A stretch of 34,171 bases of DNA from Neoconidiobolus thromboides FSU 785 (taxonomy: Eukaryota; Fungi; Entomophthoromycota). The stretch is from NCBI GenBank assembly GCA_025603075.1, contig MU626462.1, positions 1 through 34,171 on the forward strand, given 5' to 3'. Below, one piece after another: positions 5,487-26,466 of this stretch. The notes under the pieces were generated by a model, which had not been told where the DNA came from, searched no databases, and saw nothing but the letters and a program-made list of their open reading frames with translations. Each line of letters starts with the position of its first letter. The first letter of the stretch is position 1. A program made the position numbers and the translations under genes.

Positions 5487-8400
5487 TTAATTATTATTTA
5501 AAGTTAACCAAATTGGATCTAATTGAATAAAATCAATTAATTTTAAACAATGATAGCAAAAGTTGTCATGCTAAAAAAAATTATAAATAAAATTAAAATT
5601 GTAACAATAAAGTATCTACCTCATTTATAAATTTTTGATTCAATTGAGATGTTACTTTTAATAAAACTTGTTTTGCCATATAAAATAAATTAGTTATAGA
5701 TTTTAATAAATTGAGATTATAATTCTGGTATAATTTTGATTTATATGAGTTATAATCTAAATTAGATTGAAATTTTGGAAATAATGGATGTTGTTTGATT
5801 ATCTAATAGAAATTAAAATAAATTATAATTCTGTGTTATAATAAAACCTACAAATAATGCCTTCTCCAATTCTCCTTCGAAATAAGCCACAATAAACTCG
5901 AATAATTGTTGATTTTCTATTACTTGTTGTTTAACATCTATTGAAATTCGATTTTCGAAACAAGAATTATTAATCAAAGGATCAATAAAATTACGCTTAT
6001 TATAATATTCTAACTTTAATTTGTTTAAAGAAAACTCTGTTATAGTATTCATTTGATTGGATGATTTATAAATCAAATCATTTAATTGATTTATATAAAT
6101 AAGTAAATTACTTGTTATTGGCTATAAATAGAAAAATAAAAATAAAAATAAAAATATATTAATATAAATATATATAATATACTAAAATAATAAACTTACA
6201 TTTACTTGATTATTTTCTAAAATTGAATGATTTAGACTCCATTGATTTACTTTAATATCCAATAAAGGTAATAGTCTAAATACATTCTCTTCATTTCTTA
6301 ATTGAATTTCATTGCCAATTTTTAATATTAAATGATTAATATATTCCTCTTTAACGTTTTCAATATTAAAATAATTAAGATAATTTATCAATTGATTTTC
6401 CTAATAATAAAACATTAATTGTATTAACTTTTTTTATTTATAGTTACCTCATTAATATTATTCCAACTACCAAAATAAATTTCTAATTCATTTTCCTTAA
6501 TACTTAATGTCTTTTGCCATAATAATTGTTGAATGAATTTCTTTATCAATAAAGTATTAAATGATGCTAAAAATTTTAAATAAATTATTGGTAAATCAAA
6601 ATCGTTGATATTAAAATTCAATATAATTGATTTTATAATTGTTATAAAATTTAAACCATTATCAATTTCATTATCACTAGTCTCATTCTTATTTGATTCT
6701 AATTATTATTATTATTATTATTATATTAGTTATATATATATACTATTTAGATTATTTACCTTTTGACAATTTATTATCTTTAGTCTCTGTATATTTAATT
6801 AATTCATAATTAAAACAACATAAAGCTAGATTTAAAGCATGAAGTTTGTAATTTGGATATGAAGCTAAAGAATAAATAACCTAGAATAAAAAGATCAGTT
6901 GTTTTTTCTTTACAAATAGAAAATTCAATTCACTTACTTCTGAAAATTGATAAGACAACATATAAGCTTTGATTAATCCAAGTGGATTTGTATTTTGATA
7001 GCATTGAATTAAATCAATACTTTGAATTAATTTAAAGGCTTCATAAGGTTCCCATAAACTTTTTATACCCTGTGTATCATTGTTTTTACACATCATAAAC
7101 TATAAAATCATTTAAGGTTAATGATATTCTACTTTACTTTTAGGATATTATATTAAATTACTTGGAACCATAATAATTCTTCAAATGTATTTAATATACT
7201 ACTATTAACTCTTTTAGGGTCAATACACCCCATTATACGTAAGACCATTAGTTTATACTTATTTACTCCTTTAATATCTTTTCTTATTGTTTCATTATAA
7301 TATTTTATAAATTTATCACGTTGTTGAATTGATATTCTAAAATTGATATTAATTATTTAATTATCATCATTGCTATATCCTCACCTAAAGTTTTTTTCTT
7401 TCAAAAATGCTTCCAATGTCTTAACAATCTCCATATCAAATGCATCCAAGCTATTGGTATTTTTCTTAATATATTCCAAACTCTGCTTATAACATCCACT
7501 TCTTAAAAGATAATAAACTACAGTCCAAATAAAATATGGGTTATTATACTTAAAAAACAAAGTTAGCTTTAATAAATATTCTTATAATATCTTACTTCAT
7601 TTTTAGTATAAAATGAATGATTAAATTTCAATTTCACATATTTTTTAATGATATCGATTTCTTCATTATCTTCTATAATATTATCTAATTTTATGTTTTT
7701 TTTTAAAGTGTTTAAAAACCTAATTCAAAGAATTAAATATAATTTAAAAAATAACTTTTAAAGATAATTACTCTTGTTCCAAATATTTCCTTACGCTTAA
7801 AAAATAAGTACAAATAACAGTATCTTTTTTGTCAGTGACATCAAAATTAAGCTTAGGTTGATATCTCGGATTTATTTCTTGTTGCAGTTTCATATAATTA
7901 TTAATTAATACACTAAATAGCTTCCATACACTTTGAATATTATTATCCTATATTAAAGATTGATGTTAATATTAATACTTTATTTCAATTTGTTATATTA
8001 TTAATTCTTTACCTCATTAAAATTCAACTCTACTATATTAATAAATTCCTTTATTAAGTTGGGTTGATGTTTGAATTGTTGATTACTATCATACATATTA
8101 TTGACTACATTACGATAAATAAAAAATTCTTTAGGAATATACATATCCGGTCTATTTTCCTTAGCATCAAACCCATTATAATTAGATTGATATAAATCAT
8201 TATCCTTTTTCTAATTAAAATAGAATATTAAAAATGACCATTGTTATTTTATATTTATTATAAATAACCTACTTGATTTAAATAATATTGATTAATTCTA
8301 TTTAAATATGGAGCTATGATGTTGTTGATGGTTTTATTTTTAATTGGCAATGTATTACTATTCATTTCAAAATTAAACAACAACTTATCTATACTATTGG

Positions 8401-22830: not shown

Positions 22831-23393
22831 CCTGCTCCCTTTTGTTTATTTATTTATTTTGAGCCTTTAATATTTTAAACCCCTTTGTTTTTGTTCCTTC
22901 TTTTTTAAAGTACCATAATAGCATTTAAATAGGGTTGATTGAATAAATTTATGTATAATATTAACTACTAATTCTCTTTTTTTATTCATGTTAAATATGT
23001 AGTAATATAGGAAGTTAACATGTTTAATGAAAAGTGCAATACAAGCTTTTTATAAATAGTATTTGAACATAAATTGAATAGTTAAAAACCTAAACTTGAA
23101 GGTATTTATAATTATTTTTTAACAAAAGAACATGATAGAACATTAAAAGTTTTCTTTATTATTTAATTAAAATCAAACTTTTGTTACAATAATAGTTGTT
23201 ATAACCATGAAATTTATACAGCCAATTTTAAATCAAAAATAATTTATTTTTGCAGCCTTTATTGTCAATTCGCAGATTTTATAATAAAGAAATGATAAAA
23301 AATTAAGTGAGAAACACTTTATACTTATTAGATCCGAATACTGTGTGAGCTATAAATTTTTCCAAGTATTCTGGATATATAAAGTTCAGTAAA

Positions 23394-25634
23394 ATGGAAG
23401 TGGAAACCAATAAAATTAAAAAGGAGGTGAACAAAATAAAAACAGCTCCCATCAGGGTAAAGCCAGATAATCAAAACAAACAAAATGGAAATAATGTAAA
23501 GATGAATCTCAATAGTGTGAAGTCGAATAGAAACAATCAAAAAGGCAGCAAAAAAAATGTTAACTTCAAAAATAGAACAATAAATAATAATCCCATGTTG
23601 CGGCTATCAAATAATCAAAAGAAACAAAAGGGAGATAAGGCACAGATGAATCCGATTAGCACTAAACCAAATAACCAAAGCAATCAGAACAACCAAAAAA
23701 GCATTAAAAAAGATGCTATTTTTAATAGCAAAACAGTAAAAAATAATAAACCTACACCGCAGCTATTAGAAGAGAGATTAAGTGCCAAAAAAAAGGCACA
23801 TGAAAATCTCAAGAAAAAGGCATTAGAATCGCGTAAAAAGAAAACCGAAAAACTCAAGCCTAAACTCAAAAGACAGAAATACAACAAGAAACGTGTAAAC
23901 ATGGAACAAAAAATTTTAGCCGCTCGTTACAACTACTCTCAATATCAGATCTCATTAACAAATTATAGATTCTACGACTTTAACCAAAGTTTATTAGCTC
24001 ACGCTGGGAACTACCCTGAAAACTTATATCTCTTAAGTAATGTTGATGACTTGCAGACACTCAAAAACCGAAGCTCCGAGTTTGAAGCATACTATAAGAT
24101 GAAGGGGAGTCGATATTACTATACTAGGTTTGGGTATTATAATGGAGAGGTATGGAACTCGACAAAAAGGTGTTTCATGGATGAGAATATTAAAGGATTC
24201 TTGCCAGTGAACAATCTGAAAGTTAAAGATGTGATTTATCAAGTACCAGTAAAAGCAAATGACATTAATGGGTTAGAATTTACATCGTGGGCATTTGAGC
24301 ATCTCATGGATACCTCTAGTATTCTAGATGCCTCGAAAAGCACTATATTAAGGGGCTTGTATGTTGTTGAGGATAGTGAGGCTATTTTGGTAACTCATTT
24401 TTGTGATATCAATGTTTTTTATTAATAGTCTTCTTAGAGTGCTAATCCAAGTTTCATAAAGTTTATTCATCAACTAGAAACCAGAAATGAGACAGTAATT
24501 ATTATACTACCCAATGATGACAATGAAAAAAATGACACGCCATTAGTTAATCAGTTAATTAATAATTATGAGAAAATTGAATATCAATCAGATAAAGCGA
24601 TTGAGTTATATCAAAAAGAATATAGACAGCACGGCCACGAGGAAGAGTATATAGAAGATGGCGTTAAAATGATATGGTTAAAAAAATTTAGAGGAATAAT
24701 AAGATATTATGAAATGGAGTATTTTAAAAAACAAAACTATAGTAAAATATTATGTCCTTATTATATTATCAAATTAATATTACAATTTATTAAAATTACA
24801 AGTAATCAGACTGATAAAGAGATGATAGTTAGTTTACAAGGGATTATAAAAGATAGTTTATCAGTATTAAAAAATTCAACCACACCAAATGACAAAACAG
24901 AAATGAGCAAAATGTTAATTTATCAATTAACCCCTATTCTATTCTTCCACAGAAAGCAATCGAACCGATCCGCGAAAGCTTATCTAATCAAACATCAACA
25001 TTATGTTGAATTCCTGGACAGTTTCAAAGCTTTAAACATCCCAATCTCAATCGTATGTCCCAAATCTATGCTTCATTTTACTATCTATTCCGATGGTTCG
25101 GCATGGGAATATACAAACTCTAAAGAGTATGAAAAATTCCAACGAAACTTGGAAGGAGGGGACGCTGGTACATTTTCTGGAGCTTTAGTTAGTAGCACCC
25201 AGCACATAATCACGAGTTGGAGGTACCGCATTGAAAGGATCGTGAGGGACTCGAATGGTACCGAGTTGTATGGACTACTTTTTGCTCTATTGGTAGTCAA
25301 ACAAATGAAGGTACCAATGTGTATCCGTAGTGATAACTTGTATGTGTTAAAGGTAATTGATGGACTGATAAAGCAGGGCTTAGAGCATCCTTATGTCAAA
25401 CAGTGGATTAAAATTGATTACAAAGTTAAACAATTTTTTAAGGCAATAGTTGAGATGCCAGAGATCCATGAAATTCAGTTGGAATGGATCCGATCCCACA
25501 CTTCGTTCGCAGCTAATGTAGTGGTCGATCGATTCACCAAACTGGCGTATTTTACAGCAGATATTGTACACTTTGATAGGTTTATGAGAGAGAGTAAAAA
25601 AGTTGCAGGTGAAGTTAAAGAAAAAGTATGCTAA
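23394..25634 (+). CDS. ~730-aa protein with a basic N/K-rich N-terminus, uncharacterised middle and C-terminal RNase H1-like domain; 2 exons
   Basis: The two ORF-track ORFs are in the same frame and are joined by a 48-nt phase-0 GT..AG intron (24390-24437); the frame is open from 24438 to the stop. RNase H motifs: TIYSDGS (D 25092), NGTELYG (E 25263), IRSDNLYV (D 25332), LEWIRSH (H 25497), ANVVVDRFTK (D 25527). Confidence 0.8.
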
Positions 25635-25962
25635 CTAAATAAAAAATAGAATTTTGAAATATATAATATAATTTTTATGTGATTAATTTATTATTGTGTA
25701 TTTATCAATGTGATTAAAATATGAGATAATATTGTTTTATTCTTTATTACTGACTTTATTGTGATCCTTGTGGATTTAGTAGTTTTGTTTGTGAACATGA
25801 TGTTATGATTAGACTAAAAGGTAGGTTTTCACTAATGAAGTTTTAAACGTATACTTAATAATCTTTTTTGTTTCAAAAGATGTATATCCATTTTGAATGT
25901 GATATATTTTATAATTAGTTTGTTTCAATTAAATGTAGGTTATGCTAATTTAAATAACATAA

Positions 25963-26060
25963 AGGGATGTATTTTTGTGTTTAAGAATTTATTAACAGTT
26001 TTTTCACTCAACTAGTGCTTAAAAAATAGAAAAAATAATGAAGTCAAAAAAAACATCCTC
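25963..26060 (-). mobile_element. MITE-like element, copy 9 (inverted)
   Basis: AGGGATGTATTTTTGTGTTTAAGAATTTATTAACAG...AGTGCTTAAAAAATAGAAAAAATAATGAAGTCAAAAAAAACATCCTC; flanks ATAA/ATAT. Confidence 0.78.
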
Positions 26061-26466
26061 ATATTTTTCTCAACAATCGTAATATTATTATTATTTAAAT
26101 CTAAGGGATAAAAATCACATGGTTTAATTTTTATAAATCGGGTATTCGATATTTAGATTATTCTTTTATGGTCTCGATCGGTGCGAATATCAAAGATTAT
26201 GAATGAATCCAATAAAAGGAACTACACTTCTGCTTGGAATTAGCTGTATAATATGCAACTCTAAAATTAAATAAAACTTGAAAATTTATCGTCATTCCAA
26301 CCGGACCATTGAATTTATCCAAATGACAGCTAATCCCTAAAAAATCGAAATCAAGGGAGGAAACAAAGGGAGGAGAAATATTTTAAAAATGACGTAGATT
26401 TTGAATTGTTTATAAAAAGGCTCATGCTCATCTCCTTGACTCAATTTTTAGTTTTTAATCAAAAAA

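Follow-up and report, generated by a model that had tools for sequence, protein, structure and literature searches.

A transcribed, lineage-restricted RNase H-domain gene of new architecture in the fungus Neoconidiobolus thromboides

Eukaryotes are generally held to use one RNase H1, together with the RNase H2 complex, against RNA:DNA hybrids. A 34,171-nucleotide stretch of the genome of Neoconidiobolus thromboides FSU 785, an insect-associated member of the Entomophthorales (contig MU626462.1, positions 1 to 34,171; "the window" in what follows) carries at 23394-25634 of the forward strand a gene for a 730-residue protein that ends in an RNase H1-like domain. The question raised by this locus is whether such a protein is the ordinary RNase H1 of the fungus in altered form, a nuclease taken from a retroelement, a fold that has lost catalysis, or a separate host enzyme. 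The findings described here favor the last of these, with a probability of roughly 0.68 for the reading as a whole: a transcribed host gene for a lineage-restricted RNase H that has a new architecture and is predicted to be active on RNA:DNA hybrids.

The window has a G+C content of about 27 %, as AT-rich eukaryotic DNA, and its open reading frame (ORF) track divides the gene between ORFs at 23394-24425 and 24669-25634. These are fused in frame by a phase-0 GT..AG intron of 48 nt (24390..24437), giving a 730-residue product from two plus-strand exons of 332 and 398 codons, as read from the open frames and the intron. Exon 1 (23394..24389, codons 1-332) is identical in translation to residues 1-332, and exon 2 (24438..25634, codons 333-730 and the stop) shows 100 % identity to residues 333-730, of the public record KAI9292243.1 (hypothetical protein K502DRAFT_352201, N. 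thromboides FSU 785, 730 residues; P0001), which thus has the same gene model. Searches were first run per exon (23394-24389 and 24438-25631), and residue numbering thereafter follows KAI9292243.1.

Transcription and splicing of this model were demonstrated with contigs from public sequencing runs placed on 23000-26000. A single 2611-nt contig of run X1 lies without mismatch on 23346-24388 and 24437-26000, skipping 48 nt with GT..AG ends, and sets the minimum extent of the transcript (23346..26000, plus strand). The same splice joint occurs in runs X2 and X5, whose study and organism label differ from those of X1, and also in a variant contig of about 93 % identity (X2 record 11). An exact skip of the intron shows that the contigs derive from RNA, which means that both exons lie in one transcript and are joined by splicing. 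The initial annotation, made from the sequence alone, had proposed just such a 48-nt intron joining the halves of a split gene; it had left room for exons that are not transcribed together, whereas spliced contigs in X1, X2 and X5 join them. One low-depth X5 contig covers the intron, and an unspliced form is thus present too; retention of the intron brings a TAA at 24423 into frame and ends the protein ahead of the nuclease. The start codon at 23394 is the first ATG in the X1 transcript contig, which has a 5' untranslated region of about 48 nt and a 3' untranslated region of at least 366 nt that enters a miniature inverted-repeat transposable element (MITE). Rfam and tRNA scans of the locus gave no match. 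As a separate observation, the organism-B runs X2 and X5 hold two forms of the gene over 23927-25409, one with 0-1 mismatch per contig and the other about 93 % identical; the splice of the divergent form was seen in X2 record 11, with joint-spanning contigs not all assigned to a form. Separate strains, separate haplotypes or a mixed culture could account for the two forms.

The C-terminal part of the protein (residues 538-715, 25053..25586, plus strand) was identified as a type-1 RNase H domain by family, profile and structural comparison. The Pfam family PF00075 matches exon 2 residues 253-369 above its gathering score (32.6 bits against a cut-off of 25.8, E 1.1e-7), and the NCBIfam ribonuclease HI model matches exon 2 at E 5.7e-5. 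Searched against the PDB, a profile of the RNase H domains of the family described below picks up HIV-1 RNase H and E. coli RNase HI (E 3e-6 to 1e-5), with alignments to both that span E48 to D134 of the E. coli enzyme. The four acidic residues and the histidine of the active site, which the initial annotation had read as intact, are all present: Asp551 (25092..25094, equivalent to E. coli D10), Glu608 (25263..25265, E48), Asp631 (25332..25334, D70), His686 (25497..25499, H124) and Asp696 (25527..25529, D134). Each occupies an invariant column in the alignment of five family members, among which pairwise identity is only about 20-28 %.

Modeling is consistent with this assignment. An AlphaFold2 (AF2) model built from a four-sequence alignment is of moderate confidence overall (mean predicted local distance difference test score, pLDDT, of 57), with the nuclease part at 65-92. 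The modeled nuclease resembles RNase H1 of Halobacterium (4e19, Z 13.9), LC11-RNase H1 (3u3g, Z 13.4), the foamy-virus and HIV-1 RNases H (Z 13.0 and 12.9), human RNase H1 (2qk9, Z 12.2) and E. coli RNase HI (1goa, Z 12.1; Foldseek E 6e-6). A single-sequence AF2 prediction of exon 2 reached a pLDDT of 35.7, and single-sequence searches of the PDB with exon 1 and exon 2 returned nothing meaningful. A match of the model to the Argonaute PIWI domain (Z 7.8) was rejected as lying within the noise for helical or low-confidence parts.

In comparison with cellular type-1 enzymes (E. coli RNase HI, human RNase H1, Halobacterium and Sulfolobus RNase HI, LC11-RNase H1), the protein shares the PF00075 domain and the D-E-D-D plus His order, and by our count the third carboxylate and the histidine are 55 residues apart, against 54 in E. 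coli, which leaves space for the helix-C "handle". The predicted fold is alike (Z 12-14), whereas sequence identity is only about 11-20 %, and two features set the protein apart from these enzymes. One is a family-specific signature, FSG.L...W.Y. The other is an insertion in the beta1-beta2 hairpin (residues 553-568, 25098..25145, plus strand), which is confined to the long subfamily: it is absent from the short paralogues, a similar one is found in the Massospora homologue, and it is modeled at low pLDDT (model residues 278-293). An insertion of about 15 residues following a DGS motif had been noted before; the insertion is real, and when measured against the short paralogues it comprises 16 residues after the first catalytic aspartate. 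The roughly 540 N-terminal residues of this protein are not known from any other RNase H.

Whether the gene is simply the RNase H1 gene of the fungus was addressed in the whole assembly (24.6 Mb, 799 contigs). A PF00075 search returned four loci, namely the studied gene, a paralogue on contig 4, and genes on contigs 15 and 364. The contig 364 gene is a multi-exon canonical RNH1, in which the hybrid-binding domain (HBD, PF01693) is encoded just upstream of the RNase H exons, reads as typical and is interrupted by an intron; PF01693 was found at no other place in the assembly. The outcome that would have made the studied gene an ordinary one, that of a sole RNH1 orthologue, is thus not what the genome contains, and the studied gene differs from cellular RNH1. 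With eukaryotic RNH1 (HBD, flexible linker, H-domain) it has in common the C-terminal position of the nuclease and, ahead of it, a long extension with a probable part in targeting; it differs in having no HBD, in its length of 730 residues, RNH1 proteins being much shorter, and in a family restricted to the Entomophthorales. The enzyme on contig 15 (L004:1378-1980) is a stand-alone RNase H of 200 residues (PF00075 at 89.5 bits) that lacks an HBD and starts with a short basic segment containing Cys.

The surroundings of the gene are those of a host locus. It is single-copy in the assembly at both the DNA and the protein level, no long terminal repeats (LTRs) or terminal inverted repeats (TIRs) were found within 9 kb, no direct or inverted repeats flank it, and neither exon matched a reverse transcriptase (RT) or integrase family in Pfam. 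Nor does the assembly contain another PF00075-type RNase H in a retroelement context. The earlier judgement that this is not an intact retroelement therefore holds, and the gene is not a multi-copy component of one. Within 23300-26010, only a short element past the stop codon recurs in the assembly. This MITE-like element of about 105 nt (25950-26063) lies within or just past the 3' untranslated region, has terminal inverted repeats of about 11 nt (TATGGGGATGT...ACATCCCCATA in the consensus), is dispersed in at least 40 copies in the assembly, and is found inside many highly covered transcript contigs.

Relatives of the protein are few. A HMMER search over 1.84 billion representative proteins (E up to 0.001) returned four proteins: the query itself; P0002, a 494-residue protein of Massospora cicadina (KAI0242076.1, E 3e-20, aligned to query 61-391); P0003, the contig 4 paralogue of N. 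thromboides (KAI9298845.1); and P0004, a 183-residue protein on a 1804-nt Logan contig (transcript or metagenome). A profile search covering proteins of 100-320 residues, with long RT-linked (ORF2- or pol-type) proteins outside its range, added P0005, Entomophthora muscae DSO57_1026002 (E 2e-48), followed at 44-52 bits by stand-alone RNase HI proteins of bacterial type. PF00075 is also matched by P0003, P0004 and P0005. IMG/VR and the JGI metagenome contigs yielded no relatives, a word-index search with exon 2 gave no match (the relatives lie beyond its length window or share too few words), and a full-text literature search found no paper describing such a family. On the sequences searched, the family has been seen so far only in the Entomophthorales, to which all named members belong. 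The initial proposal of a lineage-specific RNase H-domain protein distinct from cellular RNH1 agrees with this distribution and with the RNH1 on contig 364.

In a maximum-likelihood tree that includes cellular-type stand-alone RNases H, among them the contig 15 enzyme (the contig 364 RNH1 is not in the tree), the family of five proteins is a clade (support 100/100) that sits on a long branch apart from the stand-alone enzymes. Within it the short forms P0003, P0004 and P0005 group at 92/88, and the family accordingly divides into a long branch (the studied protein and that of Massospora cicadina) and a short one (the contig 4 paralogue, E. muscae and the Logan contig). In the long branch, tblastn of P0001 on the Massospora locus extends homology to residues 257-332 of exon 1, clear from about residue 285, and a phase-0 intron of 702 nt sits in the Massospora gene at the exactly homologous position, after "..DIL". 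Common to both genes are the middle region, the RNase H domain and the intron position, which argues for vertical descent from one ancestor.

The short-branch proteins KAI9298845.1 and DSO57_1026002 belong to the same RNase H clade, with the same invariant residues and the FSGVL / W.Y signature, whereas they have neither the beta1-beta2 insertion nor the basic low-complexity tail. No homology was detected between their N-terminal region of about 260 residues and the middle of the studied protein in a profile comparison of the long-subfamily middle with the short-subfamily N-terminus (hhalign probability 0.1 %). The contig 4 paralogue (L002:715-2010; 235309-235809 region) is an intronless gene for 431 residues; its RNase H active site is complete, and its N-terminal part, about 260 residues long, is an orphan region unlike that of the studied protein. 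The regions upstream of the RNase H in the Logan contig and in the E. muscae locus are homologous to each other and weakly so to the P0003 N-terminus. P0005 itself, annotated at 274 residues, seems truncated (L019:4398-5770, QTSX02005829.1): directly upstream lie about 280 residues homologous to the upstream ORF of the Logan contig (L018), in two frames, which in the sequence suggests an intron or a frameshift.

Constraint on the protein was evaluated from the form of the gene that is about 93 % identical to the window, held by contigs of runs X2 and X6. Forty of the 139 nucleotide differences are listed, and the selection figures are partial in that sense. All 17 differences listed for 25199-25523 are synonymous. 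For 25166-25409, where 13 of 17 contig differences are listed, the ratio of non-synonymous to synonymous rates (dN/dS) is 0.07 in the worst case, with the four others all taken as non-synonymous. The X6 contigs align to the gene free of gaps across 515 and 1153 nt. Judged from these differences, purifying selection on the nuclease domain is strong. In the middle region (24488-24871) the differences listed comprise 11 synonymous and 10 non-synonymous ones; given about four times more non-synonymous sites, this suggests a weaker yet real constraint.

What precedes the nuclease is less readily classified. Residues 1-170 (23394..23903, plus strand) form a Lys/Asn-rich, basic, low-complexity N-terminus, defined by composition and self-alignment, with 24 % Lys, 19 % Asn and a pI of 10.8, and with a basic run resembling a nuclear localization signal at residues 140-167 (23811-23894, plus strand); the composition described in the initial annotation was the same. 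No family in Pfam or NCBIfam matched the N-terminus, and no counterpart was found in the Massospora homologue. In the public Massospora model the start, at locus position 6001, lies far upstream of the rest of the N-terminal coding sequence, which maps from about 6544 (JAKSZP010005482.1), and since the true N-terminus there is doubtful, the lack of a basic tail in Massospora is not secure. Residues 1-170 look like a fast-evolving disordered tail. They also contain a tandem duplication of about 46 residues (23436-23740; residues 24-66 against 72-118, local alignment score 98). In residues 171-284, conservation is confined to close relatives.

Within that stretch, residues 241-269 (24114..24200, plus strand) had been proposed as a possible degenerate HBD. 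The coordinates of the motif are correct; its interpretation as an HBD is not supported. PF01693 remained without a match in residues 160-340 up to E 5. When exon 1 was aligned locally to both HBD exons of the RNH1 of the same genome, the result was no better than with shuffled sequences (p 0.15 and 0.40), and comparison of the second HBD half with residues 225-300 only was not significant by the shuffle test (p 0.075). The corresponding stretch of the Massospora homologue contains no HBD-like motif, clear conservation starting only at about residue 285. The motif, described earlier as lacking the conserved tryptophan of the HBD, does contain a tryptophan, Trp254, which is out of register with that of the HBD.

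The conserved middle region (residues 285-537, 24246..25052, plus strand, spanning the intron) was delimited by tblastn and phmmer alignments to the Massospora homologue, with which it shares about 23 % identity. It was described initially as a large unrecognized segment, and sequence, profile and structure searches leave it so: there was no match in Pfam, NCBIfam, PHROGs, PADLOC, PDB sequence profiles (including a PDB search with a profile of the middle itself) or the ESM Atlas. PHROGs and PADLOC gave nothing for the protein apart from the RNase H domain, and the ESM Atlas searches (features of the P0001 and P0002 middle, a low-confidence Atlas model, and the shape of the model) returned only RNase H-domain clusters or structures with TM below 0.4. 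In the AF2 model the middle is mostly helical with pLDDT mostly below 50, apart from a short beta-alpha-beta unit at residues 320-360 (pLDDT about 70). Model residues 155-231 also matched helical bundles (Z up to 9.8), but these matches were rejected as being at the noise level for helical or low-confidence parts.

With these findings the alternatives can be weighed. That the protein is an ordinary RNH1 orthologue whose HBD has decayed to a remnant at residues 241-269 is scarcely credible. A loose resemblance of pattern to the contig 364 HBD (YY..G...G..W...C....KGF) speaks for it, and is outweighed by the lack of any PF01693 match at E up to 5, the non-significant shuffle test, the Massospora homologue without the motif, the good HBD of the canonical RNH1 elsewhere in the genome, and the long branch that separates the family from stand-alone RNases H including that of contig 15 (a tree in which the contig 364 RNH1 is not placed). 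A pseudo-enzyme, in which the RNase H fold is retained for binding nucleic acid or protein and no longer catalyzes, is also very unlikely. Speaking for it are a domain so divergent that Pfam gives only 32.6 bits and no single-sequence PDB match is found, and the 16 residues inserted beside the first catalytic aspartate; the five catalytic residues, however, are invariant in five members of about 20-28 % identity, and the nuclease domain appears to be under strong purifying selection.

A different matter is origin. The RNase H domain, perhaps along with the middle, may have been acquired from a retroelement, of the non-LTR or another type, by an ancestor of the Entomophthorales and now be a host gene, an account that concerns ancestry and is compatible with the same biochemistry; it is considered unlikely. 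The initial annotation had allowed for a domesticated or a duplicated origin. In its favor, the family profile scores HIV-1 RNase H equal to E. coli RNase HI, and the RNases H of foamy virus, HIV and HERV-K fit the model as well as cellular enzymes do (Z 12-13). The genes are also poor in introns for an intron-rich genome (a single one over 2.2 kb in the studied gene and none in that of contig 4), and the taxonomic distribution is patchy. More generally, sequence-profile and structural similarity to retroviral and retroelement RNases H (HIV-1, foamy virus, murine leukemia virus, HERV-K, ORF2 of long interspersed nuclear elements) is comparable to that seen with cellular enzymes, and the protein has a C-terminal histidine, as retroviral enzymes do; non-LTR RNases H likewise have one. 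On the other side, there is no adjacent RT, integrase, LTR, TIR or other repeat, and the gene is a spliced, single-copy host gene under purifying selection in a genome in which no further PF00075-type RNase H of retroelement context was found; the next-best profile matches are bacterial-type stand-alone RNase HI, among proteins of 100-320 residues only, long RT-linked ones being excluded; and the intron position is common with Massospora, so any capture would be old. Sequence and modeled structure are equidistant from both, and do not discriminate between a cellular and a retroelement ancestor.

In the preferred reading, that of an active host RNase H, the basic and probably disordered N-terminus would direct the protein to the nucleus and/or hold nucleic acid, the orphan and mostly helical middle (residues 285-537), which is not an HBD, may give substrate or partner specificity, and the C-terminal domain would act as a metal-dependent endonuclease cutting the RNA strand of RNA:DNA hybrids. 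Several points weigh against this reading. The nuclease domain is very divergent and had no match in single-sequence PDB searches; its beta1-beta2 insertion, beside the first catalytic aspartate, is modeled at low confidence and could affect substrate binding; and the activity of a nuclease predicted in this way cannot be foretold with certainty. Nuclear localization is read from composition alone, and because neither the middle nor the N-terminus has a recognizable function, the biological role, for which the initial annotation had suggested R-loops, rDNA or mobile elements, is a guess. With 40 of 139 differences listed, selection beyond the bounded segments is estimated only roughly, and the runs carry the label "RNA?", itself a guess, their RNA nature being deduced from the exact skip of the intron. 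A more specific proposal is that the orphan middle is a new targeting module which aims a dedicated RNase H at one class of hybrid (e.g., reverse-transcription intermediates of retrotransposons), making the protein an Entomophthorales-specific nuclease of genome defense or maintenance. The Massospora and Entomophthora genomes, from this order, are among the most transposon-bloated in fungi; the proposal is nonetheless speculative and rather improbable.

In summary, the gene is a new architecture on a known nuclease. Its catalytic domain is ordinary and its correct gene model was already public, as a hypothetical protein, and for these reasons the value of the finding lies in the architecture and the restricted distribution and not in a new mechanism; to call it the best candidate for an undescribed system in the window, as the initial annotation did, overstates the case for one gene with a known catalytic domain. 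A fungal order keeps two extra, very divergent RNase H1-type genes alongside a canonical RNH1 and a stand-alone RNase H, and the orphan N-terminal region joined to the nuclease differs between the two. Should the proteins prove active, they would be a natural instance of RNase H re-targeting that needs no hybrid-binding domain, and the conserved middle of about 250 residues would be a candidate for a new nucleic-acid- or partner-binding module.

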